Part shown: piece by piece, positions 5,039-50,130 of the stretch
Position numbering within the stretch: the stretch's first letter is position 1
Layout of the letters: each line of letters begins with the position of its first letter
Assembly: GCF_006345805.1 (NCBI RefSeq)
Contig: NC_043021.1
Coordinates: 23,746,001-23,810,000 of the forward strand
Direction of reading: 5' to 3'
DNA: 64,000 bases
Source: Octopus sinensis
Lineage: Eukaryota
Notes under the pieces: generated by a model
What the model saw: only the letters and a program-made list of their open reading frames with translations
Told to the model about the DNA's origin: nothing
The model's database searches: none
Position numbers and translations under genes: made by a program

Positions 5039-5196
5039 CTCATAATACAAATCGTTATCCTCTAGAAAGACTCGGTCGCAATAAATATTCTGTAGTTTCT
5101 TAGCCAACCGTTCTGTGCAAGGGAACCTTTCGTACCAACATTCATAGAACTTGCAGTCGGAAGTGTGAATATGTTCAAGACAAACTTCATTGACCG
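5039..5196 (-). CDS. STC: Stanniocalcin-like paralog B, exon 2 (AVNEVCLEHIHTSDCKFYECWYERFPCTERLAKKLQNIYCDRVFLEDNDLYYE); later exons presumably left of the window
   Basis: TTTTTCAG acceptor, 158 nt (phase 1 to 0), donor GAG|GTAAAT; same five Cys and CKFYxC-xxERFPC motif as gene A exon 2. Confidence 0.85.
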
Positions 5197-24534: not shown

Positions 24535-25145
<611 letters not shown>

Positions 25146-25712
25146 CTGTCTCACCTCGTGCTCTTCCGTCTCTCACAAAGAACAGAAAGGACGCATTGAA
25201 CAGCAACATGGTCGCGGATATAAAAGAAATGTGATGGCTGTGATAACAGAACGCCTGTTTTGCATGGTTTCACCGTTGAACGACCACATACACAATAACA
25301 GAAATATAAACACAACGACAATTTGCAAGGAATCATGTCAAATTTTATTTGTAGCAAAAACAAAAAACATCATCCTTTGGTGCATAGGATCTGTTTAGGT
25401 CACTGATGATGTAAAACAATAGGAGACTGGATCTAGGGAAGCGTGGCAGGGTTCCAAATCAGCGGGAATAAATTAAAGGATCAGGAAAAAAAACCAAGTC
25501 ATGTGAAGCTTATCAGATCGTTTTGAATATTTTAATTATAGTAAAGGTGACTGGAATTTTCATTCGCATTTACCTTAATTAAAATATTCACAATGATCTG
25601 ATGAGCTTCTCCTGTTTTGTTTTGTTTTTTCCTCCTTTAAATTATATATGTAATTAATATTAATATTAGGGAAGTTATTTCCGAGTCCACAGGGGAAAGA
25701 AAAAATTAGTAC

Positions 25713-25770: not shown

Positions 25771-26060
25771 GAAGATTTGAAAATGCAATTTTCAAGATGT
25801 TAAAATATCATTTTCAAACCTTCTTTCATATATTTCCACACGTGCGGTACCTTATAACTTTACTATGTTATATATAGAAATATACATATTACAAACATGA
25901 ACATATATTCACAAACTTATATGTATAACTATATTTATCCATGCATATACATACACACACAAAAACACATGTATATATGAATATATATGCATATGTATGT
26001 ATATATATATATTTATATACATATACATGAATATACATACAAATACATACATACATACAT

Positions 26061-26190
<130 letters not shown>

Positions 26191-26575
26191 ATATACATAT
26201 ACACACACATATATAAATGTATATGCGTATATATATACACACACAGGGTATTTGTGTTCGTATATCTGACTGGGCGCGTATGTGATTAAAAGCACTAATC
26301 AAATAGATGCTACAGGCTGTATTATTATTATTGTTGTTGTTGCTGTTGTTGCTGCTGCTGTTGTTGTTGTTGTTGTTGTTGTTGTTATTATTATTATTAT
26401 TATGATTATTGCTGTTGTTGCTTTGTTGTTGATGATGTTTTTTTTGGTTTTTGGCGTTGTTATTGGTGACACACGGCACAAAAGCCTAAAAACCAAAGAA
26501 AGGACAATATTAATGAACCTTTGACCAAAAAGTTGTCCCCGAAATTTACATAACATATTATTCAATACATTCTCT

Positions 26576-26681
26576 TTAATTCGTCAATGATTCTCCAGCT
26601 TTGGCGTTGATCCATGCTGTCAACTTAGGCGCGTTTTCCGAAGTGCATTTTGAAGATATCTTACCAATATTTTCCCATAAC
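26576..26681 (-). CDS. STC: Stanniocalcin-like gene A, exon 4 (ALWENIGKISSKCTSENAPKLTAWINAKAGESLTN*)
   Basis: Strong acceptor (TTTCTCTTTTTTCTTTTGCGTTGCAG), phase 2 matches exon 3, supplies the tenth Cys, TAA at 26578-26576. Confidence 0.85.
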
Positions 26682-26779
26682 CTGCAACGCAAAAGAAAAA
26701 AGAGAAATATTGGTGTCTTTTTGAATCACACACAAGCAAATTAAAATTTTTCTGTTGTTCGTGTGCTTGTTTTAGTACC

Positions 26780-27195
26780 TATTTCATTATTACCCACAAG
26801 GGGCTAAACACAGAGGGGACAAACAAGGACAGAAATAGGTATTAAGTCGATTACATCGACCCCAGTGCGTAACTGGTACTTAATTTATCGACGCCGAAAG
26901 GATGAAAGGCAAAGTCGACCTCGGCGGAATTTGAACTCACAACGTAACGCAGACGAAATACCTATTTCATTATTACCCACAAGGGGCTAAACACAGAGGG
27001 GATAAACAAGGACAGACATAGGTATTAAGTCGATTACATCGACCCCAGTGCGTAACTGTTACTTAATTTATCGACGCCGAAAGAATGAAAGGCAAAGTCG
27101 ACCTCGGCGGAATTTGAACTCACAACGTAACGCAGACGAAATACCGCTAGGCATTTCGCCCGGTATGCTAACGATGCTGCCAGCTCACCGCCTGC
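26780..27195 (-). mobile_element. SINE family B with two tandem units, in intron 3 of gene A
   Basis: CCTATTTCATTATTACCCACAAG at 26778 and 26961. Confidence 0.85.
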
Positions 27196-27526
27196 TTGTT
27201 TTAGTACCGACTCAGTACAAACATTAACAGACCTGACATATGATCGGAGACATTTCAAACATGGTTGCCATGTCTAATTTTCAGCAAAAAGGTATCTCCA
27301 GACTACATTATTGTCATTTGACTGCGGCCATGCTGCAGCACCGCCTTTAGTCGAGCAAATCGACCCCAGGACTTATTATTTGTAAGCCTAGTACTTATTC
27401 TATCAGTCTCTTTTGCCGAACCGCTAAGTTACGGAGACGTAAACACACCAGCATCGGTTGTCAAGCGATGTTGGGGGAACAAACACAGACACACACACAG
27501 GCACACACACACACATACATGCATGC

Positions 27527-27592
<66 letters not shown>

Positions 27593-29441
27593 GTTTAAAT
27601 ATTTGTTGGGCAAGATTTTTATGTGAAGTCGTGTGTTGAAACAGATATTGTTATATAACAATATAACACATCCAATTCAGATACACGTACATACATCTTT
27701 CACTGTCTCCTATCTTTCACTTTTTGCTCTCACTTCAAAGCAAATGTCTCCTTTTCACTTTCTCCTGTCTTTCAATTTCTTCTCTTTTCAAGCATAAAGA
27801 AATTAGATATTTTTTACGGAAATTAACGAACAATCATAAGATCCTGTATGATCGACCATGTGAACGATTTGACAACTTTGATGCTTCAAACGAAAGAATT
27901 TCATAAAATAAATTCTTTTGGCAAACACACGCGCGCACACACACATATACATTCACACACACACGCACCACACACACACACACACACACAACACACACAC
28001 ACACACCACACACACACACTCTAGGTAAAACTTCTGTACGAATTATGTTATTTGTTGCTGTGTGCACGAGCAAAATTACAGCTAAAATCAAATTGAAATT
28101 ACCATTTTATGCTCCTCAATTTGTGTTTGTGATGAGCGAATTTATAAACCTGATCTTCCATATAAACTTAAAGGGAAGGTTACCCAGAAATCCTGTTGTT
28201 TCCAGGATGTCCAAGGTGACATTTGTGCCCCTACCTTATTTTTTTCCTAAATTTCTTCCGATTCCAATGCCTTTGATACAGGAGATTTCACCCCCAAAAC
28301 ACGTTCTTAACATTTTAATTTTCTCCCTCCCCACCCCATTTTTTTCATTTTCATATCAATTCTTTTCTTGGTAACCCACGGAGAAAAAAACAGAGTACGA
28401 ATCTTTAAGAATTTTCATCTTCCTTTTTCCTAAATAAAATCACTAAAATCTCCTTCGCAAACAACTACCCATCACCCTCCCACTTTCAAAAAGGTACAAA
28501 CTCCCTGTGTTTCACTTTTAACCTTATGGAAAGCAGGGAAGTTTCTTCAGAAATAATGTCGTTTACCTGTTGATTCTAGCATGTTGGATTTTCTGGTGGC
28601 AATCTGGTATTTTTTGCGCCTGCTATTTCAGTACAATTCTATGCAAGCCTGAAGCATCAGACAAATGTGCAACATTGGAAAGTTTTAGCTTTCTGAAAGC
28701 GGGTAGGTGATGGGTAGGCGTGTGGGGTATTGAGTGTTTCTTAGAGAAAAAATAAACTTAAAAGAAATATGTATATTTCCCAGATTCGTAGTCGCAGTGT
28801 TTTTCTAAGGGGATAAAAAAATCGAAAAGAAGTTACAAATTCAGAAATTGTTGTGGGAACGGGGAGAAATAAAAATTTTGAAAACGTGATTTCTGGGTAA
28901 AATCGTATAAACCCTGTTTTATACGATGAAACAATACATAGTTTGTGATCCTTCTTAAGAACAGAAGCGCTTTCGCGCTAACCCATTTCACTTTTAAAAC
29001 TCACTTTACTTTTAAACCCACTTCATTTTTAAACAAACATTTTAAAACCCACTTCACTTTTAAACAAACAATACCTTCCATTACTCCAGTAATCCAGTTC
29101 ACTATATATCAGCTGTGCCGATTCTGCCCATAAGTAAGGAACGAATAATGCAATGTGTTTGTAGGTCATAACAGCTGGGCAACGCCGGAATGCATTGCTG
29201 GTATATAAGATGGCCATTCAAAGCTATGAAATGACTATGAAATTCAATCTAGCAAAACTTGACAGTGGAAAAATGGTTCCTCACAAACATCACTAACAAC
29301 AACAACGACGACGATGACAACAACAACAACTACAACAACTACAACGGCAGCTGCAGCAACAGCAGAAACAATGTCGACGACTGTAATAACAATAAAAGCT
29401 AAGAAAACAACGATGGAAACAGATGTACGCGAAATACTTAC

Positions 29442-29668
29442 GCTTTATAATGCTGTGATTTTGATTTCTCTATGGGCCGTTTAAAAATCTGCCACAGTCC
29501 CTCGCGATTATCCCAGCCGACTTCACAAAAATCGTTTTTCATGTAACAAGTGTGTTGTATAGCCAGGGTTTTTTCGAGGATAGAATTACAATCGAGTGTA
29601 TCAGATTTGTACATATCAGTGAGTTCATTCATGAAACATCCAATTATTGAATTGATCCAAATTTTCCC
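29442..29668 (-). CDS. STC: Stanniocalcin-like gene A, exon 3 (GKIWINSIIGC...HTCYMKNDFC...QHYK)
   Basis: TTTACAG acceptor, 227 nt (phase 0 to 2), donor GC|GTAAGT; C-x15-C-x13-CY-x5-C spacing and GK start as in STC1 exon 3. Confidence 0.9.
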
Positions 29669-29779
29669 CTGTAAAGTTAGGAAGTTTTTGAGTGAAAAAT
29701 GAAATTAGTTTATGAGCGGTTATTCTTGTGGTTTTCTTTTCTGACGATTAATACGGATCATTATGGAAAACTAATCGTA

Positions 29780-30195
29780 TCTTTACTCTTTACTCTTTTA
29801 CTTGTTTCAGTCATTTGACTGCGGCCATGCTGGAGCACCGCCTTTTTTTAGTCGAGCAAATCGACCCCGGGACTTATTCTTTGTAAGCCCAGTACTTATT
29901 CTATCGGTCTCTTTTGCCGAACCGCTAAGTGACGGGGACGTAAACACACCAGCATCGGTTGTCAAGCAATGCTAGGGGGGGACAAACACAGACACACAAA
30001 CATATATACACACACTTATAGATATATATACATATATACGACAGGCTTCTTTCAGTTTCCGTCTACCAAATCCACTCACAAGGCATTGGTCGGCCCGGGG
30101 CTATAGCAGAAAACACTTGCCCAAGATGCCACGCAGTGGGACTGAACCCGGAACCATGTGGTTGGTTAGCAAGCTACTTACCACACAGCTACTCA
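29780..30195 (-). mobile_element. SINE family A copy, 110 bp from the exon 3 acceptor
   Basis: Reverse complement of 23484 copy. Confidence 0.9.
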
Positions 30196-30559
30196 TATGC
30201 TAATCATTATTATGTTATTTAAAAGCAGATGTGAAACATGTATGAATGAGATATTAATTAGAAAAAGAGACATAGAAATGAAAAACTCAGAAAAGTAAAT
30301 GAATCTAAACGCGCTCACACACCTACACACACACATCACAGATAAATTAGCAATCAATTGTAATGTTGGTTAGAATCCAGTTATCTCAACAATCAGGACG
30401 CCCTAAAAGGGTCGAATCCCAACACGTACATAAACGTTCATATAGATACATACATTTATACGAATATGTATATACACACACATAGGTTATTGATATAATG
30501 CAAGTTATAGATCCAACATAAGGATGATTCAAGGGTTTATATATAAAAAAAAAACAAGT

Positions 30560-30980
30560 GGCGCAGGAGTGGCTGTGTGGTAAGTAGCTTGCTAACCAAC
30601 CACATGGTTCCGGGTTCAGTCCCACTGCGTGGCATCTTGGGCAAGTGTCTTCTGCTATAGCCCCGGGCCGACCAATGCCATGTGAGTGGATTTGGTAGAC
30701 GGAAACTGAAAGAAGCCTGTCGTATATATGTATATATATGTGTGTGTGTGCGTGTATGTTTGTGTGTCTGTCTTTGTCCCTCTAGCATTGCTTGACAACC
30801 GATGCTGGTGTGTTTACGTCCCCGTCACTTAGCGGTTCGGCAAAAGAGACTGATAGCATAAGTACTGGGCTTACAAAAGAATAAGTCCCGGGGTCGAGTT
30901 GCTCGATTAAAGGCGGTGCTCCAGCATGGCCAAAGTCAAATGACTGAAACAAGTAAAAGAGTAAAAGTGTAAAAGAGTAA
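30560..30980 (+). mobile_element. SINE family A copy
   Basis: Near-identical to 23484 copy. Confidence 0.9.
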
Positions 30981-30990
30981 GTGGAGTTTA

Positions 30991-31076
30991 AAAATTCACA
31001 ACATCTGTTTCAGCAACATTTCGAATTGGTTATTGCAATTATATCGCGGAAAAATCCGCAATCATCAGGTGATTTT
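30991..31076 (-). ncRNA. Type I hammerhead-like motif with enlarged stem II
   Basis: AAAATCAC-CTGATGA-[insert]-GAAAC-AGAT-GTT-GTGAATTTT; stem I 8 bp with one bulge. Confidence 0.5.
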
Positions 31077-31111
31077 AAACATGGGCAGGAAGAGAAAATT
31101 TATACAGACCC

Positions 31112-31490
31112 ACTAGATTTTTTCGGTTTGAAAGGCAGTTTTTCTAGCGGTGTCATATGAAATTGTCACCCATAATTATGACCCTAGAATCGATCTATTG
31201 CATTTCAATCTGTTTTAGGGTTAGAGTTAGTCAGGGTTATTGTTAGGAATGGGTGGAAGGTTATCTTTTTTTTTCTTCAGAAATGTAAATAAACACAATC
31301 TGTTTCTTAAACGAGGGACATATTCATACGGCACAGAATGTTTTTACCTCAATAGACGTCAGTGATTGGTTGAAATTGCAGAAATTGAAGAAAAAAAACA
31401 ACAAATATCTTAGAAACTATAGAATTTTCTCTATAAAGCCAAGAGAAAAAGATGTTTTATAAACGCATTCTAAACCGAAACGATCCGATC
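31112..31490. mobile_element. Small element with imperfect terminal inverted repeats and TTAGGG-like core, related to 2586-3420
   Basis: GATTTTTCGGTTT at the left, AAACCGAAACGATC at the right; internal homology to 2680-2810. Confidence 0.5.
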
Positions 31491-32430
31491 CACTTTGCTA
31501 AGCCATTAGCAATGCAGAATTTAAGAACCGTTGAAAATTTAAATGACTGTCGGCGATTGACTTACGGCAGAGATTAAAGGCAACAACATTTTTATAGATC
31601 GCTCTCATAATTAATTATGCACCTAATGAGGACTGGGGTAGGCAATAAAGGATGAGAAGAAGATAGAGAAAGGAAAATAAAGAATATTATAGAGGAAGAA
31701 AGGGAAAGAAAGTTCATCATGGCGTCTAAATCTTTGTGCCATTCAAGTGATTACCGCAACTGGAGCCTTCGTTATCACACACACACATCAACATAGATTT
31801 ATACACATCTAAACAATATATTGCTTCATACATCTTCATACACGCGAATATATACACCTAAAAATCCATAAATACGTAAGTACACATACTTATAGAGACA
31901 ACCACACCCACACATAAACACACACAAACACATAAACATACACACATACACACACATATATACATACACTCAGATATACATACAAACACGCTCATATGTG
32001 TGTGTGTGTGTGGGGGGGTGATATGTCCTAAAATAAGCACACTCTAAAGGACTGAGCAGTTAATTATATGTCCGGTCATAAAGTAACCAATGGGTTAGCA
32101 TCCATAAAGCGTTAAGTTTCATGGACGGCTCGTCAGACACAAATGGCAGATGGTATATATCCCTTTTCAAACAGAAAAGGGAAATGTTATGGTCAATTAA
32201 TTTGTTAACAAAAGCTAAAATACCGTTTGAGACTTGTCCGAGTTATTTCACTGAGACAAGTTCAGATGGCAAAATTTATGATCTGAAGTGGCGAAAGGGG
32301 AATCTCCGCCCTTACGCAGTTTCAAGTTTGCGGGGACATTTTTCGTCTCAAATCAACGTATGGGGAATACCACACCCGTAGTATGAAGCGTTTGAGATGA
32401 AGGCATGGGCTATAAATCTCGTTTCTAGAA

Positions 32431-32472
<42 letters not shown>

Positions 32473-32641
32473 AATATTAGGGAATGAATCCAAAATTACA
32501 GGGAAAAATCAGATTTAGGGTTAAATCCAATTTTATAGTAAAATATTATATAATATAATTCGAGACAAAACAACTATTTTAAAACCAAACAAGGAAAGAC
32601 TTAATCAATACATAAAATTTTAATATAAATTAAATAAACCG

Positions 32642-32684
32642 CCACTACAAATGTTTCATGTCTGCTCCGACAATCTTCAGGTGG
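32642..32684 (-). ncRNA. Minimal type I hammerhead ribozyme motif (left arm)
   Basis: CCAC-CTGAAGA-T-TGTC/GACA-T-GAAAC-ATTT-GTA-GTGG. Confidence 0.7.
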
Positions 32685-35600
32685 ATTTTCGATCTAAGAA
32701 TAGCAATATTTTAAAATATAATTTAAAATAATTTAAAATGATAAAACAATAAAATTATCAATGAAATAATGTAAAAAAATAAAAATATAATCTATATATA
32801 ATCTATATATAATCTATATATAATCAATATATAATCTAAAATAATCTAAAATAAACCCTATAAACAATTGAATATAAAAACCTATTATAAAATTTCTCAT
32901 ATTTAAAAATGTACAAAAACCAAAAAACAACACGCAAAAAACAAAAACCAAAACCTAAAAACAAAAAACAAAAAACAAAAAACAAAAAATAAACTATATA
33001 TACACATACATGCTCATACACTCAACACATTACTTATTCATACATCCTCACACACACATACAACACTCAATTCATAAACAATATACATATACCCGCTCAC
33101 ACATACATATACATACACATACATACAGAACACGATATATACCAATATATAAACACCCACACCCATACAGATAAATAAATTACGCAAACAATCACACACA
33201 CACACACATTTTCACACATACATAAACACTCAAAAGAAAACTGAACAATTCTTAGCACGTGGATATCAAACATTTAAAAAAAATTATGAATGGAAATGAA
33301 ATCCATACATACAAGTATAAATATAACTATACAAACCCTAACACAATACACACAAATACACACACATATATACACACACCCACAAACATAACCATATACA
33401 CACTCACACATACATATACATACGTACAAGTCCCGATACAAACAAACTTTAATAAAACGACCATTAAAAACGAAAACTCATATATATTAATATATATATA
33501 AAAAAGAGTGTGTACACGCAGACGGGTGCAATCACACGCACATTCAAAACTTACATATATACAAGTGCATAAATAATCACACCCAATTACATAGCACTCA
33601 TACACTCCCACATCTACACTTACACTTGTACACTCTCACACATACATACACACCCATACCTACATACAAAAAATATATTTCTAGTTTTATAGTTTAGGCT
33701 TTAATTATAGTTAGTATTTAATTGGTATTTCTTTGTTTTGTATTTAATTAATATTTTATTGAGTGTGGGAATGAATAATAGTGTATATATCGAGTTTGTA
33801 CGTAAGTATATGTATGTGTGAGTGTGTATTTGGTTATGTTTGTGGGTGTGTGTATATGTGTGTGTATTTGTGTGTATTGTGTATGAAAGGGGTTTTATCT
33901 TTATCTTTTTATTTGTATGTATGGACTTCATTATCATGATTAGTTTAATAAGTATTTTGCATGAATGTATGGGTGTGTATGTAGGTGTGCGTGTGTACAA
34001 GTGTAAGTATAGATGCGGTAGTGTATGAGTGCTATGTAATTGAGTGTAATTATTTATGCAATTGTATACATGCAAGTTTTGAATGTCTGTGTGATTGCAC
34101 CCGTCTGCGTGTACACACTCATTTATATATATATATATTAATATCTATTTGAATTTTAGTTTTTATGGGTTTTTAAAAAAATTGTAGAAAGTTTTGTATA
34201 TTCCATTCATATTATGTGTAGAAATGTTGTTTTTCTTTTGTATGTTTATGTATGTGTGAATTTGTGTGTGTGTGAGTTTTTGCTTGTATCGAGTTTTGTA
34301 CGTATGTATTTGTATGTGTGAGTGAGTATAAGGTTATGTTTGAGGGTGTGTGTATATATGTGTGTGTATTTGTGTGTATTGTGTAAGGGGTTGTATCTTT
34401 ATATTTATACTTGTATGTATGGATTTTATTTATCATGATTATTTTAATAAGAATTTTTGTATGTAGGTATGGGTGTGTATGTATGTGTGAGAGTGTACAA
34501 GTGTAAGTGTAGATGTGGGAGTGTATGAGTGCTATGTAATTGGGTGTGATTATTTATGCACTTGTATACATGTAAGTTTTGAATGTGCGTGTGATTGCAC
34601 CCGTCTGCGTGTACACACTCTTTTATATATATTTTAATATATATATATGAGTTTTCGTTTTTAATGGTCGTTTTATTAAAGTTTGTTTGTATCGAGATTT
34701 GTACGTATGTATATGTATGTGTGAGTGTGTATATGGTTATGTTTGTGGGTGTGTGTATATATGTGTGTGTATTTGTGTGTATTGTGTTAGGGGTTGTATA
34801 ATTATATTTATACTTGTACGTATGGATTTCATTCATAAATGATATATAAATTAATAAAATTAATAGCCCCCTATTAAAGGTTACTGTAGATTAATTTGTT
34901 TTTAGTTTAGAGTACAATATATTTATTTTTAGTTATATAGTTTAGACTTTAATTATAGTTAGTATTTAATTGGTATTTCTTTGTTTTGTATTTACTTAAT
35001 ATTTTATTGAGTGTGTGAATGAATATTAGTGTATATATCGAGTTTGTACGTATGTATATGTATGTGTGAGTGTGTATATGGTTATGTTTGTGGTGTGTGT
35101 ATATATGTGTGTGTATTTGTGTGTATTGTGTATGAATGGGGTTTTATCTTTATCTTTATATTTGTATGTATAGACTTCATTGTCATGATTAGTTTAATAA
35201 GTATTTTGTATGTAGGTATGGGTGTGTATGTATGTGTGCGTGTGTACAAGTGTAAGTATAGATGCGGTAGTGTATGAGTGCTATGTAATTGAGTGTGATT
35301 ATTTATGTACTTGTATACATGCAAGTTTTGTATGTCCGTGTGATTGCACCCGTCTGCGTGTACACACTCATTTTTTTTATATATATATTAATATATATGA
35401 GTTTTCGTTTTTTTGGTTTTTTTAAAGAATTTGTAGAAAGTTTTGTATATCCATTCATAATTTTTTAATTTACGTTTGTTTACTACGCGCTAAGATTTTT
35501 ATATTCCATTCATAATTTTAAAGACGCTGTTTTACGCGGCGCTAATAATTTTTATATGTTCGGTTCCATGGTAACGCAATTTTTTGTTTATTGTAATAAC

Positions 35601-36941
35601 GGATAAAGTTATTCACTTCAAAATTTGATACTGATTAGAAGGTATGTATATTTTTCTCCTTGTTAATCTTGTTACTTATGATATCTGATTTCTTATGGAG
35701 TATTTTATATATCGTATTATGTGTAGAGATGTTGTTTTCTTTTGTATGTTTATGTATGTGTGAATTTGTGTGCGTGTGCGTATTTGATTGTATCGAGTTT
35801 GTACGTATTATTTGTATGTGTGAGTGTGTATATGGTTATGTTTGTGGGTGTGTGTGTATATATGTGTGTGTATTTATGTGTATTGTGTAATGGGTTGTAT
35901 CTTTATATTTATACTTGTATGTATGGATTTTATTTATCATGATTATTTTAATAAGAATTTTTTGTATGTAGGTATGGGTGTGTATGTATGTGTGAGAGTG
36001 TACAAGTGTAAGTGTAGATGTGGGAGTGTATGAGTGCTATGTAATTGGGTGTGATTATTTATGCACTTGTATATATGTAAGTTTTGAATGTGCGTGTGAT
36101 TGCACCCGTCTGCGTGTACACACTCTTTTTATATATATATTAATATATATGAGTTTTCGTTTTTAATGGTCGTTTTATTAAAGTTTGTTTGTATCGGGAC
36201 TTGTACGTATGTATATGTATGTGTGAGTGTGTATATGGTTATGTTGTGGGTGTGTGTATATATGTGTGTGTATTGTGTGTATTGTGTTAGGGTTTGTATA
36301 GTTATATTTATACTTGAATGTATGGATTTCATTTCCATTCATAATTTTTTTTAAATGTTTGATATCCACGTGCTAAGAATTGTTCGGTTTTCTTTTGAGT
36401 GTTTATGTATGTGTGAAAATGTGTGTGTGTGTGTGTGATTGTTTGCGTAATTTATTTATCTGTATGGGTGTGGGTGTTTATATATTGGTATATATCGTGT
36501 TCTGTATGTATGTGTATGTATATGTATGTGTGAGCGGGTATATGTATATTGTTTATGAATTGAGTGTTGTATGTGTGTGTGAGGATGTATGAATAAGTAA
36601 TGTGTTGAGTGTATGAGCATGTATGTGTATATATAGTTTATTTTTTGTTTTTTGTTTTTTGTTTTTTTTTTAGGTTTTGGTTTTTGTTTTTTGCTTGTTG
36701 TTTTTTGGTTTTTGTACATTTTTAAATATGAGAAATTTTATAATAGGTTTTTATATTCAATTGTTTATAGGGTTTATTTTAGATTATTTTAGATTATATA
36801 TTGATTATATATAGATTATATATAGATTATATATAGATTATATTTTATTTTTTTACATTATTCATTGATAATTTTATTGTTTTATCATTTTAAATTATTT
36901 TAAATTATATTTTAAAATATTGCTATTCTTAGATCGAAAAT

Positions 36942-36984
36942 TCACCTGAAGATTGTCGGAGCAGACATGAAACATTTGTAGTGG
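36942..36984 (+). ncRNA. Minimal type I hammerhead ribozyme motif (right arm)
   Basis: TCAC-CTGAAGA-T-TGTC/GACA-T-GAAAC-ATTT-GTA-GTGG. Confidence 0.7.
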
Positions 36985-37076
36985 CGGTTTATTTAATTTA
37001 TATTAAAATTTTATGTATTGATTAAGTCTTTCCTTGTTTGGTTTTAAAATAGTGGTTTTGTCTCGAATTATATTAT

Positions 37077-37116
<40 letters not shown>

Positions 37117-37121
37117 CACAG

Positions 37122-37166
<45 letters not shown>

Positions 37167-37360
37167 ATTTTCGAGCTACAGTGATTCATCAACTCGAAAA
37201 TTTAAAGAAATTAACAGCCATGAAACGATCGTAGTGATATATTAATTATATTTTTTTAATAATTTTGTTATATATTTAAATAATATAAATTAAATAATCT
37301 TATGTATTGGCTTAAGTTTTTCATTGTATGATTTGCCTAATAGTGGTTTTGTCTCTAATT

Positions 37361-37419
<59 letters not shown>

Positions 37420-37421
<2 letters not shown>

Positions 37422-37710
37422 CGTGATCACCGTGACCGACCAGGCTATCAGATGTTGCTACACATCGCTGGTCAAAATGTGCTTCGCATTGTTTTAGCCT
37501 TCAAATGACGCCATCCCGCTGACTGAGCGACCAGGCCAACAGAAGAAGGAGTGAAAGAGTACAGCAGAGATCACCACCACACCCTGCCGAAGCCTCGTGG
37601 AGCTTTAGGTGTTTTCGCTCAATAAACACTCACAACGCCCGTTCTGGGAATCGAAGCCGCGATCCTACAACCGCGAGACCGCTGCCCTAACCACTGGGCC
37701 ATTGCGCCTC
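37420..37710 (-). mobile_element. tRNA-derived SINE family C
   Basis: Reverse complement of 56129-56432. Confidence 0.85.
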
Positions 37711-37798
<88 letters not shown>

Positions 37799-37807
37799 CT
37801 ATGTATG

Positions 37808-37839
<32 letters not shown>

Positions 37840-38245
37840 AAGAGAAGAGGGGAGGAAGAGTGAGAGAAAGGAGGAAAATGAGAGATAGCTTCTGGGAAAT
37901 AATTGTACAAAATCTTTAATATAATATCGGGTCATTGCTGAGCGCAGCGAGGACCTTCATTTTCTTGTATTTCGTATATGTTTGTTTGGATATATTATAC
38001 GTATCTAAATCTATACATGTAAAGTCTTTATATTCCACAGTCACCACTTCAAGAAGATGCACAGTCCACTATCAGTTTAGGACAAGATGTTGACAACTAA
38101 TTACTATCCATATGGATACAGCTGTAAATTATTTTATTTGTACAATCCGAAATCGTCCCTGAATTTGTATTTAAAATGGTGTCATTGTGCATAAATAGCA
38201 TGAATTTTGATTCCTGCTATATTCTCTGCCTTAGCTAAATTCTTT

Positions 38246-38304
<59 letters not shown>

Positions 38305-38341
38305 CACATACTATACACTCTCTCAAACACACACTCATACA

Positions 38342-39169
38342 CAGGGTGATGAATTGGGGAATAGAAAGCAGAAATACTAAATTTGTAGTAGAGAAAATGT
38401 TAGCTGACTTGGAGTACTGAATGCCATCTTAAAAAGTTTTATATGCATCTTGATTTCGCTGGGTGTCAAAATGCCGACCTCACGACCGCTGCTCAAAGCT
38501 CTGTGAACGCTGTAAAAGCTGTAAGACATGACATAGACAGCTTCAACGGCAGCTACAAAGTTGTGAGCTATGATCAGCGGAAGGGGCACAGTAGACTTTC
38601 TGACTGGGTTTCTACGCCGAGATTCCGCCCCACATCTCCAAACAGGGACTGAGGTTCAATTCAGACGGCTATGTGACGCTGCTGGAGAATGTGGCAAATC
38701 TCTGGCTGGAGAGGGTTGCTAGCGGATAACCATACATATGGCACAAAGATTCAACTCCTTGCTATACCTTCGGAAAGAGTTAGAATTGGTTGTCGGAGAA
38801 TTTATGCGTCTTTACCAGTCCTAATTTCTGGGCCTCCTAATTCTCTCCGATTATAAGCTCATGTTTGGGCACGGTTGAGACAGACGCCAAACGCCAAACA
38901 CTCTGCGTGCAACTCCAAGGCCTCGTTCATGGCCAAGATGAAGGTGTTCGAAGATCTTCTCAGAGACACAGTGAGGTACGTATGTACCAGATGCTGCAGC
39001 CGTCTTAAGGCCTTAGTGAAAGGCGAGGGAGGTTATTTTGAGTAAAGTGTTATTTGCCAGCAATATTCTAGTTGATATTTTTGAATTATTTAAAAGGTAA
39101 TTTATTTTTAGATGGGATATTTTGTCTTCTACTTTTATAGAAACTGTTCAATTTAGCCCAAACACCCTG
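38342..39169 (+). mobile_element. Tc1/mariner-superfamily (maT-like) decayed transposon
   Basis: CAGGGTG...CACCCTG termini; YIWHKDSTPC and FW-PPNS motifs; ends GEGGYFE*. Confidence 0.65.
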
Positions 39170-39240
39170 TACAAACTTTATTCACTCTTTCTCATTCTAT
39201 TTCTCACGCACAATTCTTTCCACTTAAGAATTTCACTTAC

Positions 39241-39401
39241 TATATCATTCAAAGTTTTTGCCACGTTCAAAGCTCTTCTACATTGCCTATACGAGGTATC
39301 CTGCTTCTTTCTTTCGGGATGACAAGGGAACCTCTCATCCAAACATTTGTAAAACTTGCAGTTGACATTTTCACTATGTTTGAGACATTTGGGAGTAACG
39401 T
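39241..39401 (-). CDS. STC: Stanniocalcin-like gene A, exon 2 (DVTPKCLKHSENVNCKFYKCLDERFPCHPERKKQDTSYRQCRRALNVAKTLNDI)
   Basis: Polypyrimidine+CAG acceptor, 161 nt (phase 1 to 0), donor GTAAGT; five Cys with C-x8-C-x4-C spacing as in stanniocalcin. Confidence 0.9.
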
Positions 39402-39504
39402 CTGAAAAAGAAAAAGAAAAGAAATACAAAGGTATTAAACACGGTGTTACCGATTCTTTCTGGTTATTAATAATAAGACCCCCACCTCCCCTAAGAGAGC
39501 AAGA

Positions 39505-39808
39505 CAAGAAGCTGGCATTCCGTCGCTTGCTCCCACGAGGGTTCCAGGTGATCCGATCAATGGAACAGCCACTCCACAGACACGTGTACGTTTAACGTAC
39601 TTATCAGGGAGATTTAGCATGACACAAAACGCAATCAGGTTGGCCCTTCGAAATACAGGTACTACTATTTTTTTTGTTTTTGCTCACTGAGTGGATTGAA
39701 GCAATATGAAATAAAGTGTCTTACGCAAGGACACAATGTGTCGCCAGGAACTGAACTCATGACCTTACGATTGTGAGCCGAGAACCTTAACCATTAAGCT
39801 ACGCACCT
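39505..39808 (-). mobile_element. tRNA-derived SINE family D
   Basis: Head GGTGCGTAGCTTAATGGTTAAG...GAGTTCAGTTCC, then TGTGTCCTTGCGTAAGACACTT; related fragment at 18880-18960. Confidence 0.65.
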
Positions 39809-39859
39809 GAAACGGGTAAAAGGTAAATAAAAGATGAAATTTTGATGGTGGGAGCCAAT

Positions 39860-40930
39860 CGGACAAAATAATGGAAACACCTTAAAAATTCAAATAAATT
39901 AATTTTAATATGGGGTAGGACCACCTTTGGCAGTAATTAGAGCTTGTTTTTCTAAAATGCACCATAAATGTTCAATAATATTGAGATCTGGGGATTGTGG
40001 TGGCCAGATAAGATGTTCAACTACACTAGAATGTTCCTCGTGCCATTCAATAACAACTTTAGCTGTGTAAATTGGTGCATCATTATACTGAAAGATTGCG
40101 TTTCCCTCTGGAAACAGTTCCGCAACCATAGGATGAATTTGATGAGATAAAATGCTTAAACTGTCTTGACTATTAATACTGCCATGAAGGAAAACCATTG
40201 AGCCGGCGGATTTCCAAGATATAGCCCCCAGATCATCAGATCCACCACCATGTTTAAGAGTTAGAAGAAGGCAGTCTGGGTCAAATGCCTCTTTTGGCTG
40301 TCTCCACACGTATACTCGCCCGGTGGTCGGAAATAATATAAAGGTTGACTTGTCCGAGAAAGTAACATTCTTCCACTGCTCTAGGGACCAATTTTGTAGG
40401 TTTTTACTCCACTCTAATTGCTTTGCAACGTTTATTTTTGAATGTAGTGGTTTTCTGATTGCAGCCCTCGCGTGAAATCCGGCTTTGTGCAGCTCCCGGC
40501 GAACAGTTTTTGTGGAAACTGGGTTCTTAAGGTGGTCATTAAGCTCTGCAGTAAATTGGGGAGCTGTACTGTTGTGATCCTTTCTAATAATTCGCGTAAG
40601 AGTCCGGAGATTTGTTTCAACGAGGAAGTTTTTCCCTCTTTCTCAAAGGCTGCCATTACTTTCCAGACAGTATTTCTTGATACACCAAACATTTGGGCTG
40701 CCATATGCGCACCAACAATTTGACCCCTTTGAAAGTCCGATAGATCTATCATGTTAATGGATTTTGATTATCTTTTTCTGGTGATATCTGAAAGAAACAG
40801 CAATTTTAGCAAAACATATTAAGCAACACTAATAATAAATCAAAAGCAGAAAAATAAACAAGCTTTTGACAGTTTTATCAATATTTCAAAATTATGATGC
40901 TATGATGCTAGGTGTTTACATTATTTTGTA
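39860..40930 (-). mobile_element. Tc1-like transposon, internally deleted and frameshifted
   Basis: TIRs ACAAAATAATGGAAACACCT / AGGTGTTTACATTATTTTGT; DLSDFQRGQIVG, KHGGGS, WPPQSPDLNIIEHLW. Confidence 0.85.
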
Positions 40931-40939
40931 AGTAGCTGT

Positions 40940-41060
40940 GAGGTAAGTAGCTTTCTTCCCAACCACATGGTTCCGGGTTCAGTCCCACTGCGTGGCACCT
41001 AGGCCAAGTGTCTTCTACTATAGCCTCAGGCCGCCAAAGCCTTGTGAGTGGATTTGGCAT
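40940..41060 (+). mobile_element. SINE family A head fragment
   Basis: Matches family A 5' part. Confidence 0.75.
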
Positions 41061-41954
41061 TCAAACCTGGCTTGAATGCTTGCAACAGAGTAGAATTTGC
41101 TTAAGGCAGCTGAGGTCCCAGGTCGTGCTGCTAAGTCCGGACAACGGATTGAATATGCCGTGTCTGCTGGCCGTCTCGGGATTTGAACTCATAACGCGAA
41201 GACCGGGCAGTAATCTAGCAAGGTACCCGATCAGCTGCTTTCAAAGATCGTCAGTTCTCTGTTATGAATTCGTACCATTGTTGATGACTCCGAAAATGGT
41301 GGAAGGCAAATTTGACCTCTGGGAGACTTGAACTCAGAACATAGATATTGAAACAAATGCTACAAAGTAATCCTTGATATTAGCCTTCCATGTGTCGAGA
41401 TCTTTAATATCTAAGAAAGCATTTTTTAATATTTCACTACTGAACATGTACATACTGTCTGTTTTTAACGCAATCAAGCATGTCGAAAGACCCTCCTAAA
41501 TCTATGGGATTAATAAAATTAATATTCCTCTTGAAGACTTGCAGGAGAGACATGTACAAGGAGGTAAGTTAGAGGAAAGATGGACTGGGTGCTGTGGTTA
41601 TTAACTCGATGGGTCACAAGGGTGACAAGAGGAGGAAAGACAAATGTTTTGGAAATGCTTGAGTTGAGGAGATATGAACTCACTTCGAGGGGCATTCGAG
41701 ATCAGAAACCATTCCCTGTGGCAAGAAACCTATCGCTCCCCCAGATTTTAATTCCTCACTCCTTCTAATATAATGTAACCCCGTTATACATACATTGCCT
41801 AAGCTAAGATTCATGTAGTTCCTTCGGATTTTCAGACTTTATTCCTATATCACTCTACTAATTTATGTAATCCGGTTACACATGGCGTAGAGAATCACTC
41901 TTTGTTCTCTTATTTTATTAACATCTTCGTTCAACTCCATTTATTTATTTATTC

Positions 41955-42012
<58 letters not shown>

Positions 42013-42152
42013 TATATATATATATATACATATAATATATATTAGGGAATAATTTAATATAATATATATACATATATATATATATATATAATAATATATA
42101 TAATATATACATATAATAAATATTAGGGACTAATTTAATATAATATATATAC

Positions 42153-42184
<32 letters not shown>

Positions 42185-42185
42185 G

Positions 42186-42217
<32 letters not shown>

Positions 42218-42269
42218 TATATATATACATATATACATATATACATATACACATATATACATATACACG

Positions 42270-42427
42270 ACGAGCTTCTTTCGGTTTCCGTCTACGAAAT
42301 TCACTGAGAAGTCATTGGTCGACCCGTCGCTATATTAAAAGATACTTGCTTAGGGTGCCCCGCCGTGGTAATGAACCCGGAACCATGTGTTTGAGGAGCA
42401 ACTTCTTATCACACAGCCACGCCTGCG
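42270..42427 (-). mobile_element. SINE family A head fragment
   Basis: Reverse-strand match. Confidence 0.7.
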
Positions 42428-43059
42428 TCTGTTACTACTCAGCCAATCCTGCGCATTGATAACCTGTTCATGGAGTACTGGAATATTAGCAACAATTGTG
42501 ACTGTTCCGGAAACTTTTGATACCACTTCGTATGTATGTATATTATATTTGCTGATGTGTCTGCATTTATACATTACACTATACTGGAAATCGTCCAGTG
42601 ACAAGACTAAGTCACTACAGTTAGAGATAGGACGGGATACAGTTGATGACCCCATTGTCATCACCGGGCCCTGTTCGCACTCCAAAACGCTTGTTGTTCT
42701 CCCCACCCATGAGATATATCTGTGAGATAGACAAGGTTGAAATTAAACTGTAATTGTCCAAAACAGAAAAAAATTACTTAGCTATTGCAACAACGACTGT
42801 TTAGGTGAGGTGACTACATTGTTAACAGAAGGAAGACGGTGAGCTATGCATTGGGTCAAATCAATTTAAACAGTCCCTGTTAGCAAATAACAGTGTTAGA
42901 GAACACTATAAGTATTGATACTGTTTGAAGGTGCCGAAATCTTTGGAAACACAATTCGAGACCTGATGTAGAAGCTCCACATAAAATACAAATAATATAT
43001 ATTAATAAATATATACACAGACACACTGATGCAAAAAAGAAAAACACTGATGCACTCAC

Positions 43060-43165
43060 CTGCTTTGGCTTTAATAACACGAGCAGGGTCAAGTTCAGTG
43101 TGAAAATAAAATCCTTTGATTGCTAATACAAATGACATCAAAAGAACCGCGAGAAACCTCCACAT
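43060..43165 (-). CDS. STC: Stanniocalcin-like gene A, exon 1 (signal peptide; MWRFLAVLLMSFVLAIKGFYFHTELDPARVIKAKA + 1 nt)
   Basis: ATG at 43165, hydrophobic N-terminus, 106 nt ending G|GTGAGT (phase 1); splices in frame to the exon at 39401; homologous to the paralog exon at 15605-15704. Symbol is family-level only. Confidence 0.85.
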
Positions 43166-43272
43166 GTTTTCTACTTCTTTCTGCCTACTTAAATACCAAA
43201 GTCTTGTGCTGCTATCAATGTGTTCTGCTCTCTTCAAATCCTTCTCTCGAATTGTATTACTGATGTCTGCAT

Positions 43273-43921: not shown

Positions 43922-44000
<79 letters not shown>
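43920..44000. repeat. (TATC)n microsatellite, left flank of the LINE stack
   Basis: Direct reading. Confidence 0.95.
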
Positions 44001-44001
<1 letters not shown>

Positions 44002-45370
44002 CATTTGCTGTCAACACCCGTTAAAAGGAGGACTGGGCATGCCGTGGTTGATGATGCGCAGACACGCGCTGAGACTGCGACATCTCAGGCTCTTCGTAGA
44101 CGACGGTGAACAGGTGTGGTCGCCGTTTGTGAGGCACGCTTTCCCGCAGCTCGTCTCCATGACCGAACTGCAGTCGTGGATCAAAAAGAGGCCGAGGAAG
44201 GGTGAATGGCACCACGAGTGTCGCGTTGCTCTCAAGCAACTCTGCCGTCCTGGGTCGACCTTGAGTGACTTCAACACAACCAAAGCATTCTATAGGGGAT
44301 TAGTGGAGGGGAGGTACGACGACGAGCTCGGGGCGAACCTGGACGTCGACGAGGAGTACCTGACCCGCCTGTTCAGGACGACTTTCGGGCCAGGGCCCAT
44401 GGACAACGTCCAGAGATCCCTGGCCTGGCAGTGCTACCGAGAAGCGCTACACGTTCGGGATAAGCTCTACAGACACGGCTCGAGAAACACGGGGCCGACC
44501 TGCCCGAGATGCGGTCAGAGCGACGAAACCGTTCTGCACGCACACGTGCAGTGTCCAACAATTTCCGACCTGTGAGCTTATGTCGAACAACTGTCACGTG
44601 TGGGACGAGTCGGTTTATCAGCTGAGTCTATCGTCAATATTGTCACGCCTCCTTCCTTCAAACGGGAAGGAAGAGCTATTTTCATCATCTTTGTGGCTAT
44701 GGCGAAAGAATGTATCTGGTGGACGCGTCTGAAAGGATTGGAGACAAACACTTTCCTCTCTGGTCAATCTCTCATCAACTTCTTCAAGTACCACTTGAAA
44801 AGGAAAGTGAGATTAGAGAGGCAAGTTTTGTCTAGCGAATGTTTTAAAAAAAGATGGGTGACTGTAGCAAGGATGGCACGTATGAATGACGAAGCCACCT
44901 TGAGCATAATCCTATGAACCCAGAAATTGAAAACAGAGGGTTACCCACTTGCAAACAAATGTGGTAACATGTAACAATATTGACCAAGGTTACCGTGGTC
45001 TTTTTCGTAGGCTTTTCTTCCCACAGATAAACCTTACTTGTTTTCCCCTTTACACCATATATCATAACACTGTGATACACGATCCCTATTGATCGTTTTT
45101 TTTCCTCTTCCCCTTTTTTCCCCCTTTTTCTTCTTTTTTCATTTCTCTTTTCTTTTGTTCCTTTTCCTTTTCTTTTTTTTCTTTTTATTCTTTTTATTTT
45201 ATTTTATTTATTTTTTTGTTCTTTTCTTCCCTTTTACGATCCCTCTTGATCGAAAACCTACGCCACCCCTTTTTTTTCTTTTGTTTTTTGTTTTTTTCAT
45301 CCCCAAAAGAAAAGCTCTACCTTGTAACTTGTCCCATCTATGTGCAGCCCTGTGTGGCCAATAAAGAAAC

Positions 45371-45371
<1 letters not shown>
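43999..45371 (+). mobile_element. L1/Tx1-clade LINE, 5'-truncated copy (ORF2 C-terminus + 3' UTR)
   Basis: ORFs 44039-44575 and 44600-44917 with CPRCGQSDETVLHAHVQCP; AATAAA at 45360 then (TATC)n. Confidence 0.9.
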
Positions 45372-45418
<47 letters not shown>

Positions 45419-45419
45419 A

Positions 45420-45452
<33 letters not shown>

Positions 45453-45460
45453 CTGTCTAT

Positions 45461-50118: not shown

Positions 50119-50130
50119 TATCTATCTATC

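Follow-up and report, generated by a model that had tools for sequence, protein, structure and literature searches.

A four-exon stanniocalcin-family gene in a tandem array of Octopus sinensis

The 64,000-nt stretch of Octopus sinensis DNA analysed here (the window) carries an intact four-exon protein-coding gene, LOC115224535, which we explain with high confidence as a secreted member of the stanniocalcin family and a diversified copy within an Octopus tandem array. The initial annotation had presented this gene as hidden; however, RefSeq LOC115224535 ("uncharacterized protein") is an identical 199-aa model with the same coordinates (CM016883.1, record positions 23772576-23789165, corresponding to 26576-43165 of the window), and its database entry already carries a PF03298 match. 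What is new is the array context, the gene itself being an existing NCBI prediction that is neither hidden nor a unique hormone gene.

Gene structure

Joining four minus-strand exons (106+161+227+106 nt; phases 1, 0 and 2) produces a 600-nt CDS encoding 199 aa, with the ATG start codon at 43165 and the TAA stop codon at 26578-26576, which reproduces in full the exons, GT..AG borders, phases and protein length given by the initial annotation. All three introns are GT..AG, with donors G/GTGAGT, A/GTAAGT and G/GTAAGT and acceptors ending in TTTCTTTTTCAG, CTAACTTTACAG and TTTGCGTTGCAG; the junctions are predictions based on the sequence, on homology and on the NCBI model. The features of the gene are:

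43166..43265, minus strand: proximal upstream 100 nt, containing TATTTAAG at 25-32 nt from the ATG; putative core promoter or 5'UTR
43060..43165, minus strand: coding part of exon 1, residues 1-35 and the first base of codon 36; phase 1; donor G/GTGAGT
43112-43165, minus strand: signal-peptide-like segment MWRFLAVLLMSFVLAIKG, within exon 1
39402..43059, minus strand: intron 1, 3658 nt, GT..AG
39241..39401, minus strand: exon 2, 161 nt, residues 36-89, Cys1-Cys5; acceptor ...TTTTTCAG, donor A/GTAAGT, phase 0
29669..39240, minus strand: intron 2, 9572 nt, GT..AG, repeat-rich
29442..29668, minus strand: exon 3, 227 nt, residues 90-165, Cys6-Cys9, conserved GW.NR motif; phase 2 at the 3' end
26682..29441, minus strand: intron 3, 2760 nt, GT..AG
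26576..26681, minus strand: coding part of exon 4, residues 165-199, Cys10 = C177; ends in TAA

The exon 2/3 junction directly precedes Gly90-Lys91, a pair that aligns with G99-K100 of human STC2. Intron 1 contains a Tc1/mariner-type DDE transposase fragment (39905-40309), and a donor-like G/GTAAGA occurs inside exon 4, at about 26665. The gene had also been described as invisible to the ORF track. This holds insofar as no mechanical ORF reveals the gene, although such ORFs do overlap exons 1, 2 and 3 (42896-43237, 39178-39507 and 29438-29632, respectively).

Family membership, fold and comparison with known stanniocalcins

The encoded protein belongs to the stanniocalcin family and is predicted to form an all-helical bundle resembling human STC2. 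It matched the Pfam Stanniocalcin profile (PF03298) at 49.2 bits (E-value 5.6e-13; curated cutoff 23), a phmmer search against the PDB retrieved STC2 only (E 7e-4), and a family profile compared with human STC2 gave an E-value of 3e-15. In a Foldseek search of the PDB with an AlphaFold model built from the alignment (pLDDT 90.5, pTM 0.80), the four best matches were all human STC2 (TM 0.53/0.61), and the next match had a probability of 0.28. Together with the intron positions and phases shared with Lottia (below), the profile and fold matches support the earlier proposal of an intact, secreted invertebrate protein of stanniocalcin fold. The N-terminus is signal-peptide-like, as had been suggested, and the mature form would be about 21 kDa with a pI of about 8.9.

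The translation bears out the reported ten cysteines (positions 41, 50, 55, 62, 76, 100, 116, 130, 137 and 177; spacing 8,4,6,13,23,15,13,6,39), as well as the 22 residues that follow the tenth Cys and contain no further one. Since no Cys lies beyond the tenth, the protein cannot form a C-terminal interchain disulfide of the vertebrate kind, in line with the original view that it is probably not a covalent dimer through that site. This is no special feature of the protein, because invertebrate homologues as a rule have no 11th Cys: no Cys occurs beyond the tenth in 34/36 of those compared, and invertebrate stanniocalcins normally lack it (PMC5654410). The spacing 8,4,6,13,23,15,13,6 was common to 20/36 homologues and is modal for invertebrates.

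Human STC2 and STC1 are dimeric glycoproteins that inhibit PAPP-A and PAPP-A2 (PDB 8A7D, 8A7E, 7Y5Q; PMC9579167). The octopus protein is about 16-18% identical to STC2 and shares six of its nine Cys spacings (8,4,5,8,23,15,13,6,34 in STC2, from PDB alignments), differing in longer Cys3-4, Cys4-5 and Cys9-10 gaps and in a C-terminus about 100 residues shorter. It has no equivalent of the STC2 dimerisation Cys (C211), and no NXS/T N-glycosylation sequon was found in its 199 aa. Ser111 and Asn95 stand at the positions of STC2 Cys120 and Lys104, respectively, residues whose roles we take from PMC9579167; covalent trapping of a pappalysin in the STC2 manner would not be possible.

Invertebrate (protostome-type) homologues include the 'stanniocalcin-like protein' LOTGIDRAFT_170051 of Lottia gigantea, the oyster 'Stanniocalcin-2' K1PDI7 and a Mytilus 'stanniocalcin-like protein', which have in common with LOC115224535 a signal peptide, the modal ten-Cys spacing, the lack of an 11th Cys and a length of about 190-230 aa. 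The Lottia gene has introns at the same three positions, with phases 1/0/2 and an exon 2 that is also 161 nt long, but contains four introns as opposed to three. The octopus protein is 19-28% identical to non-cephalopod members; it has a short C-terminal tail (22 aa), and its Cys4-Cys5 loop is charged (HPERKKQDTSYRQ) where a hydrophobic stretch has been described as typical of invertebrate stanniocalcins. The canonical cephalopod type, represented by Argonauta hians 'LOC115215717' (P0004) and the transcript-assembly proteins P0151 and P0008, resembles LOC115224535 in its signal peptide, GW.NR motif and identical Cys spacing, including a cephalopod-specific 39-residue Cys9-Cys10 gap. However, these proteins are about 27-35% identical to LOC115224535, fall in a separate clade, and keep both the GY....G..YC hydrophobic loop and a Lys-rich C-terminal tail of 38-42 residues. 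P0004 bears a GeneID-style name, LOC115215717, with a number in the range of those carried by the O. sinensis genes identified here.

A tandem array of diverging copies

At least four stanniocalcin-like paralogues, LOC115224535 included, are arranged head-to-tail on the same strand. The other members are:

LOC118767942: some 217 kb upstream; shares record and strand with LOC115224535
LOC118767950: ends about 30 kb upstream, in adjoining DNA overlapping the window end
fourth copy: begins 10.9 kb downstream of the LOC115224535 stop codon
15605..15704, minus strand: exon 1 of the fourth copy, 100 nt, MWKFSTVILMSFVLTG..., phase 1, donor G/GTTAGT
5039..5196, minus strand: exon 2 of the fourth copy, 158 nt, phase 0, AG/GT borders; Cys1-Cys5 spaced 8,4,6,12

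The fourth copy is more divergent, and its exons 3-4 are expected past the left window end. In a rough neighbour-joining tree, computed from distances, without support values and with the canonical type represented as above, the array proteins form a clade seen so far in Octopus alone, apart from canonical cephalopod stanniocalcin. Further members of this clade are O. bimaculoides LOC106876188, LOC106876190, LOC128250800, LOC128250809 and LOC128250786 and O. vulgaris CAI9734732; the five O. bimaculoides genes with a genomic record are all on one contig. The Octopus paralogues resemble LOC115224535 in having four exons (where checked), short tails and charged Cys4-Cys5 loops; LOC118767950 comes closest, at 63% identity, and the others are 28-50% identical. 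All are labelled 'uncharacterized' or 'hypothetical', and within the collection of papers searched, none mentions any of the six identifiers queried, which stand for genes or proteins of O. sinensis and O. bimaculoides. The evidence thus supports LOC115224535 as a derived array copy, not obviously the canonical stanniocalcin of O. sinensis.

Divergence from the neighbour LOC118767950 is unevenly distributed along the gene. Exon 1 (94% nt identity, dN/dS 0.12) and exon 4 (94% nt identity, zero synonymous differences) are nearly unchanged, whereas exon 2 (dN/dS 1.06) and exon 3 (72% nt identity, dN/dS 0.67) diverge at about the rate of the intron background (74-78% identity), giving an overall dN/dS of about 0.8. 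Near-identity extends to intron patches (96-99%, including the first ~450 nt of intron 1) and to the upstream DNA (about 95% over 100 nt, 88% over 200 nt), of which the final ~45 nt before the ATG are recognisable upstream of the third paralogue too in a three-way comparison. The two neighbours differ at about half of their core residues, yet both retain all ten Cys, as well as the family-invariant F52 and Y109.

Possible origin and function

The family membership of LOC115224535, evident from its gene structure and Cys pattern as well as from the profile and fold matches, would also suit an ordinary octopus stanniocalcin hormone, an endocrine or paracrine factor that works like vertebrate STC1/2, in Ca/phosphate handling or in non-covalent inhibition of invPAPP-A via the C-domain/LNR3 exosite. 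Val48 aligns with human STC2 Val63, a PAPP-A contact (PMC9579167), and Lophotrochozoa have pappalysin homologues with a conserved LNR3 (PMC11925022). We nonetheless regard this reading as doubtful: a separate, less diverged canonical octopod type exists (P0004, Argonauta) while LOC115224535 sits in the Octopus-only clade, the hydrophobic Cys4-Cys5 segment described as a hallmark of invertebrate stanniocalcins and the long canonical cephalopod tail are missing, Ser and Asn replace STC2 Cys120 and Lys104, a mature-domain dN/dS of 0.7-1.1 between neighbours is unusual for a conserved hormone, and Kjeldsen and Oxvig thought an invertebrate STC-invPAPP-A interaction unlikely (PMC11925022). By analogy, the protein could instead be a venom 'doppelganger' toxin of the posterior salivary gland, injected to mimic the stanniocalcin of the prey, an idea we hold tentatively. 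It would accord with the lineage-specific tandem expansion, the conserved signal exon, the fast-diverging mature exons and the lost canonical features, and with the secreted SF5 stanniocalcin-like transcripts that the preprint cited below classes as highly expressed in salivary glands of two octopods. However, the protein scores lower against human STC2 than the canonical octopod protein (22.6 and 34.2 bits), a poor fit with sequence mimicry of the vertebrate hormone; its loop lengths are invertebrate (6 and 13) rather than vertebrate (5 and 8); and PMC5654410 and the preprint both state that stanniocalcins are absent from crustaceans, the main prey.

A dN/dS near 1 is equally expected from relaxed constraint, so the overall value of about 0.8 and the background-like divergence of exons 2-3 would also fit a recent duplicate heading to pseudogene, with little or no expression. 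The 90% cluster of the protein consists of one sequence, taken from a genome, with none from a transcript assembly, and in amphioxus the tandem STCc-like duplicates were considered pseudogenes by Roch and Sherwood (PMC5654410). Such decay is nevertheless improbable, given that nothing disrupts the reading frame, the start, the stop or any of the six splice sites, that all ten Cys, F52 and Y109 were kept while about half of the core changed, that exons 1 and 4 are conserved far above background, and that identity to the O. vulgaris copy reaches 98% across the shared part. It is highly improbable that open frames and GT/AG dinucleotides lined up here by chance, a reading with no more in its favour than that GT..AG pairs are generally easy to find in AT-rich DNA. 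The Pfam E-value of 5.6e-13 and the independent, identical NCBI gene call mark a real gene, and with the conserved Lottia intron positions they effectively refute chance; the paralogues also have the same exon structure.

For the diversified array copy that we favour, tandem duplication would have enlarged the array, with exon 1, exon 4 and the intron patches kept near-identical by selection or gene conversion, and the mature-domain exons drifting at about the neutral rate around a constant disulfide scaffold. Fixed disulfides combined with near-neutral mature exons suggest a secreted binding scaffold with a diversifying surface. The protein would most likely act extracellularly, as a monomer or non-covalent dimer with a protein partner bound. 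It is possible that this role is exocrine, in salivary or venom-gland secretion of the kind reported for two other octopods, and an endogenous paracrine or hormone-like role appears about equally likely; a duplicate in decay, with weak expression, has a lower probability than either, and a modest share of the probability falls to none of the three. The exocrine analogy draws on the SF5 'stanniocalcin doppelganger toxins' (Koch et al. 2026), octopod secreted proteins described as having stanniocalcin homology across the whole post-signal precursor. In the part of the preprint at hand, O. vulgaris was sampled too but SF5 is named for O. bimaculoides and H. maculosa, in which stanniocalcin-like SF5 transcripts are secreted and highly expressed in the salivary gland (bioRxiv 10.64898/2026.02.02.703354).

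A spliced gene already predicted as LOC115224535

Reading the sequence bore out every detail of the gene proposed in the initial annotation: four minus-strand exons with canonical borders, split at phases 1-0-2 by introns of 3658, 9572 and 2760 nt, join into a coding sequence of 600 nt that encodes 199 residues.

Exons of the focal gene (window coordinates)
43165-43060, minus strand: exon 1; ATG at 43165, GTGAGT after 43060
39401-39241, minus strand: exon 2; polypyrimidine tract and CAG ahead, GTAAGT after
29668-29442, minus strand: exon 3; borders of the same kind as those of exon 2
26681-26576, minus strand: exon 4; terminates with TAA

The gene had also been described as hidden and as invisible to the ORF track. 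No ORF reveals it, but mechanical ORFs do overlap exons 1-3. Nor is it hidden from the databases, since NCBI already predicts the identical protein over the same span under the name 'uncharacterized protein LOC115224535 [Octopus sinensis]' (100% identity over the full length), and the match to PF03298 is already in the database. The coding sequence of LOC115224535 occupies CM016883.1 23772576-23789165, which corresponds exactly to 26576-43165 of the window, the span first proposed (record position = 23746000 + window coordinate, an offset derived from the neighbouring locus that overlaps the right end of the window). A literature search for LOC115224535 and five related O. sinensis and O. bimaculoides gene or protein identifiers found no mention of them. 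The focal gene is unnamed but already predicted, and it is not new in kind; as stanniocalcins of invertebrates had already been described by 2011, it is no biological discovery. That a spliced gene and its family were correctly inferred from raw sequence validates that approach.

No canonical AATAAA occurs within 1 kb past the stop codon of the gene, and the sole match is an ATTAAA at +1040. Within exon 4, a donor-like G/GTAAGA follows codon Ile170 (~26665, minus strand). Scanning the window for Rfam families and for tRNAs yielded no match.

Membership of the stanniocalcin family

The focal protein belongs to the stanniocalcin family on four independent lines: a Pfam match, a sequence match to STC2, the fold of its model and the structure of its gene. 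Its PF03298 score is 49.2 bits against a curated cutoff of 23 (E = 5.6e-13), with residues 28-167 aligned to profile positions 26-158 of 200. Among solved structures, human STC2 was the only one matched by sequence (E = 7e-4), and a profile of 36 homologues matched STC2 with E = 3e-15 over STC2 residues 49-198. An AlphaFold model computed with the 36-sequence alignment reached a pLDDT of 90.5 and a pTM of 0.80, as compared with a poor single-sequence model (pLDDT 48.5); past the signal peptide, the alignment-based model has ten helices. When the alignment-based model was searched with Foldseek against the PDB, ranks 1-4 were all STC2 chains from complexes with the pappalysin PAPP-A (8a7e, 8a7d, 7y5q and 8hgh), with TM-scores of 0.45-0.53 (query) and 0.51-0.61 (target) and probabilities of 0.97-1.00, albeit with weak E-values (0.015-0.25); rank 5 had a probability of only 0.28. 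According to PMC9579167, STC2 consists of 11 antiparallel helices packed into a bundle, a structure for which no other homologue is known. In a stanniocalcin-like gene of Lottia gigantea, these three alignment positions likewise hold introns, in phases 1, 0 and 2, and exon 2 measures 161 nt in both genes, although the Lottia gene has one extra intron, of phase 0, beyond these three. The initial assignment as a stanniocalcin-like secreted protein is therefore correct by profile, fold and gene structure. A Cry1Ac_D5 Pfam match (E = 0.09, under its cutoff) and PDB matches to scorpion kaliotoxin (E = 0.3-0.6) were dismissed as chance.

The ten cysteines of the protein (residues 41, 50, 55, 62, 76, 100, 116, 130, 137 and 177) are separated by gaps of 8, 4, 6, 13, 23, 15, 13, 6 and 39 residues, with 22 residues past the last, and all of them fall in conserved cysteine columns of the 36-homologue alignment, the disulfide pairing being predicted. 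Such a ten-cysteine pattern is the hallmark by which the family is recognized, while an 11th cysteine is a dimerisation feature of vertebrates (Roch and Sherwood 2011, PMC5654410). The modal spacing of 8, 4, 6, 13, 23, 15, 13 and 6, present in 20/36 homologues, is identical to that of the focal protein, and the last gap of 39 is common to nearly all full-length cephalopod members, the canonical type included. As first proposed, the protein could not form a covalent dimer through the C-terminal 11th-cysteine site, since no cysteine occurs in the 22 residues after Cys177. This is normal among homologues and does not set the focal protein apart: 34 of the 36 aligned sequences have no cysteine past the tenth.

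The N-terminus, MWRFLAVLLMSFVLAIKG, is signal-peptide-like by inspection (Arg3, a hydrophobic core of 13 residues, Gly at -1); it aligns with the hydrophobic N-termini of homologues and forms a separate helix in the model (residues 2-19). The mature chain is basic (pI 8.9) and about 21 kDa. None of the 199 residues lies in an N-X-S/T sequon, in contrast to vertebrate STC1 and STC2, which are N-glycosylated at a conserved sequon of this type.

A branch apart from canonical cephalopod stanniocalcin

When 1.84 billion representative proteins were scanned exhaustively with HMMER, 147 matched, and the closest matches were exclusively Octopus proteins, of O. sinensis, O. vulgaris and O. bimaculoides. 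In O. bimaculoides, the five genes with a genomic record all lie on one contig. A profile search of a 5.8-billion-protein set with alignment A1 returned only 5 proteins. In a rough neighbour-joining tree the Octopus proteins formed one clade, apart from the canonical cephalopod group, which comprises two transcript-assembly proteins and the Argonauta protein that bears the name LOC115215717, and also from chiton, oyster, mussel, limpet, annelid and amphioxus homologues. A hydrophobic six-residue region between the fourth and fifth cysteines is a feature of protostome stanniocalcins (Roch and Sherwood 2011, PMC5654410); the canonical members have a hydrophobic segment there, for example GRKGYAHNIGMFY, whereas the focal protein has HPERKKQDTSYRQ instead. 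The canonical cephalopod proteins also carry a Lys-rich tail of 38-42 residues, as compared with 22 in the focal protein and 18-22 in its array, whose Cys4-Cys5 loops are charged, and against human STC2 the canonical octopod protein scores 34.2 bits and the focal protein 22.6. A search with the canonical Argonauta protein returned only itself, and a canonical stanniocalcin of O. sinensis was not found by it; judging from the gene name of the Argonauta protein, such a copy (LOC115215717) presumably exists in O. sinensis at a separate location. The modestly useful part of the finding is this context, a private, tandemly expanded and fast-diverging octopus branch beside the canonical copy.

A tandem array of paralogues

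The upstream neighbour of the focal gene, LOC118767950, encodes 195 residues that are 63% identical to the focal protein, in a four-exon structure identical to that of the focal gene; it ends ~9.5 kb outside the right edge of the window, ~30 kb upstream of the focal ATG. LOC118767942 follows on the same strand ~217 kb further upstream; in all, the array covers about 23.70-24.04 Mb of CM016883.1. Downstream of the focal gene, tblastn detected two exons of a divergent paralogue, distinct from both of these, whose other exons would fall past the left edge of the window.

Exons of the divergent paralogue (window coordinates)
15704-15605, minus strand: exon 1; phase as in the focal gene, intact splice border
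5196-5039, minus strand: exon 2; phase as in the focal gene, intact splice borders, Cys1-5 spaced 8, 4, 6, 12

An O. vulgaris gene-model protein of 308 residues, P0002 (gene span 102 kb), joins exon 2 of the neighbour to focal-type exons 2-4, followed by a low-complexity tail. We discounted it as a genuine isoform, and it has the look of a chimera created by annotation from the two neighbouring paralogues; it does reveal that the gene order in O. vulgaris is the same as in O. sinensis. The P0002 model appears to be spliced from the site equivalent to ~26665 into an exon of Glu/Gly/Lys low complexity, which would drop Cys10; this is probably an annotation artefact, though it could be a minor isoform. 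A 333-residue O. bimaculoides protein, P0149 (LOC106876188), likewise fuses adjacent array members into a two-domain protein. Because gene models are fused in these two other Octopus annotations, annotation-based paralogue counts for the array are unreliable.

The sequence upstream of the ATG is conserved in all three paralogues, at ~95% between the closest two, and contains a (T/C)ATTTAAGTA motif at about -32 to -23. It may represent a shared core promoter, as far as sequence conservation can suggest.

Conserved regions upstream of the ATG
43166-43265, minus strand: focal gene
15705-15750, minus strand: divergent paralogue
9901-10000 of L001, the neighbouring locus overlapping the right end of the window: upstream neighbour

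Uneven divergence between copies

Comparison of the focal gene with LOC118767950 revealed that divergence is distributed unevenly along the gene.

Divergence of the focal gene from LOC118767950
Exon 1: 94% nucleotide identity; dN/dS 0.12
Exon 2: 83% nucleotide identity; dN/dS 1.06
Exon 3: 72% nucleotide identity; dN/dS 0.67
Exon 4: 94% nucleotide identity; no synonymous change
First ~450 nt of intron 1 (42505-42960): 96-99% identity
200 nt just 3' of exon 2 (~39041-39240): 96% identity
Intron background around exons 2-4: 74-78% identity

The near-identical intron patches suggest gene conversion; the stretches in intron 1 and beside exon 2 could be gene-conversion tracts or, alternatively, conserved regulatory or splicing elements. 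In the mature-domain exons, divergence is about that of the background, as would also occur in a decaying duplicate, a reading of the focal gene that we hold improbable. All ten cysteines are kept, together with F52 and Y109, other residues invariant in the family, and by a rough estimate, neutral divergence to this extent would leave ten cysteine codons intact in well under 1% of cases. The pattern that the comparison points to is one in which the disulfide scaffold is held constant while the surface changes freely, the ends of the gene being homogenised or constrained.

Relation to STC2 and possible roles

The vertebrate cysteine spacing given in the initial annotation agrees with that of STC2 as read from alignments, where the gaps Cys3-4, Cys4-5 and Cys9-10 are 5, 8 and 34 residues, as compared with 6, 13 and 39 in the focal protein. 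PMC9579167 reports that STC2 forms its interchain dimer disulfide by C211, that its Cys120 bonds to Cys732 of PAPP-A, and that its contacts to the C domain/LNR3 of PAPP-A include Val63 and basic residues, among them Lys104, a key contact to LNR3. The focal protein has no equivalent of C211. Cys120 lies opposite focal Ser111 in an ungapped stretch of the alignment; Lys104 lies opposite Asn95 and is lost, and Val63 lies opposite Val48 and is kept. All of the exactly ten focal cysteines are at scaffold positions, with none spare. STC2-type covalent trapping of a pappalysin by the focal protein is excluded, because it has neither a Cys120 equivalent nor a spare cysteine.

For invertebrates at large, Kjeldsen and Oxvig consider an interaction between stanniocalcin and the invertebrate pappalysin, invPAPP-A, unlikely (PMC11925022). 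We commit to reading the focal protein, from its sequence, as a putative secreted protein with an extracellular binding function, encoded in a diversifying stanniocalcin array that is specific to octopuses. An endogenous signalling role for the focal protein is conceivable, if somewhat doubtful.

We hold a salivary or venom role for it in a similarly guarded way, and a lesser part of the probability we assign to none of these readings. The preprint of Koch et al. (bioRxiv 2026) lists SF5, a stanniocalcin-like cephalopod salivary superfamily, among the secreted products whose transcripts are highly expressed in the salivary glands of O. bimaculoides and Hapalochlaena maculosa, and reads it as hormone-mimicking toxins ('stanniocalcin doppelganger toxins'). 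An exocrine family would fit both the way in which the array evolves and the fact that its tandem expansion is confined to one lineage. However, the canonical copy lies closer to vertebrate stanniocalcin than the focal protein does, O. vulgaris was sampled by Koch et al. yet is not named for SF5 in the available part of the preprint, and the argument is one from sequence, in which SF5 membership of the focal gene is putative. It is rather unlikely, in our judgement, that the array as a whole is a stanniocalcin-derived exocrine (salivary or venom) family engaging stanniocalcin targets in prey. Such a family would have arisen in octopods through tandem duplication; the signal and C-terminal exons would stay near-identical across copies while the surface of the mature domain diversified, and the proteins would act on prey via whatever stanniocalcins bind there, a pappalysin or some receptor. 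On that reading, the variants, being compact, non-glycosylated and able to act as monomers, would lend themselves to probing for the stanniocalcin target that has long been sought outside vertebrates. Were the array to supply the stanniocalcin-like proteins of the venom gland, it would be a documented case of recruitment from hormone to secretion, as well as a source of small disulfide-rich proteins with which invertebrate stanniocalcin binding could be probed.

Repeats and other elements

Between the focal gene and its upstream neighbour, a non-LTR (LINE-type) retrotransposon is present in several degraded copies, whose ORFs carry Exo_endo_phos, RVT_1 and zf-RVT domains; this element also recurs many times, at 80-95% identity, within intron 1 (45 kb) of the upstream paralogue. 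A 152-aa ORF had no Pfam match at E 1e-3; on our own recognition, it resembles the C-terminus of a PIF1-type (Helitron-associated) helicase.

Other elements in and around the window
43999-55800, plus strand: LINE-type copies
7100-31500 and 60800-64000 of L001: LINE-type copies
39905-40309, minus strand: fragment of a Tc1/mariner-type DDE transposase ORF in intron 1, on the same strand as the focal gene (Pfam DDE_3, E = 1.7e-9)
17997-18455, minus strand: 152-aa ORF
1107-1628, 5360-6455, 15733-16274, 24150-25400 and 25889-26480: long microsatellite or low-complexity tracts

The low-complexity tracts include (CAA/CAG)n, beginning ~100 nt past the focal stop codon, (TA/CA)n and (CTG/ACA)n, and it is because of such tracts that the mechanical list holds many spurious long ORFs.
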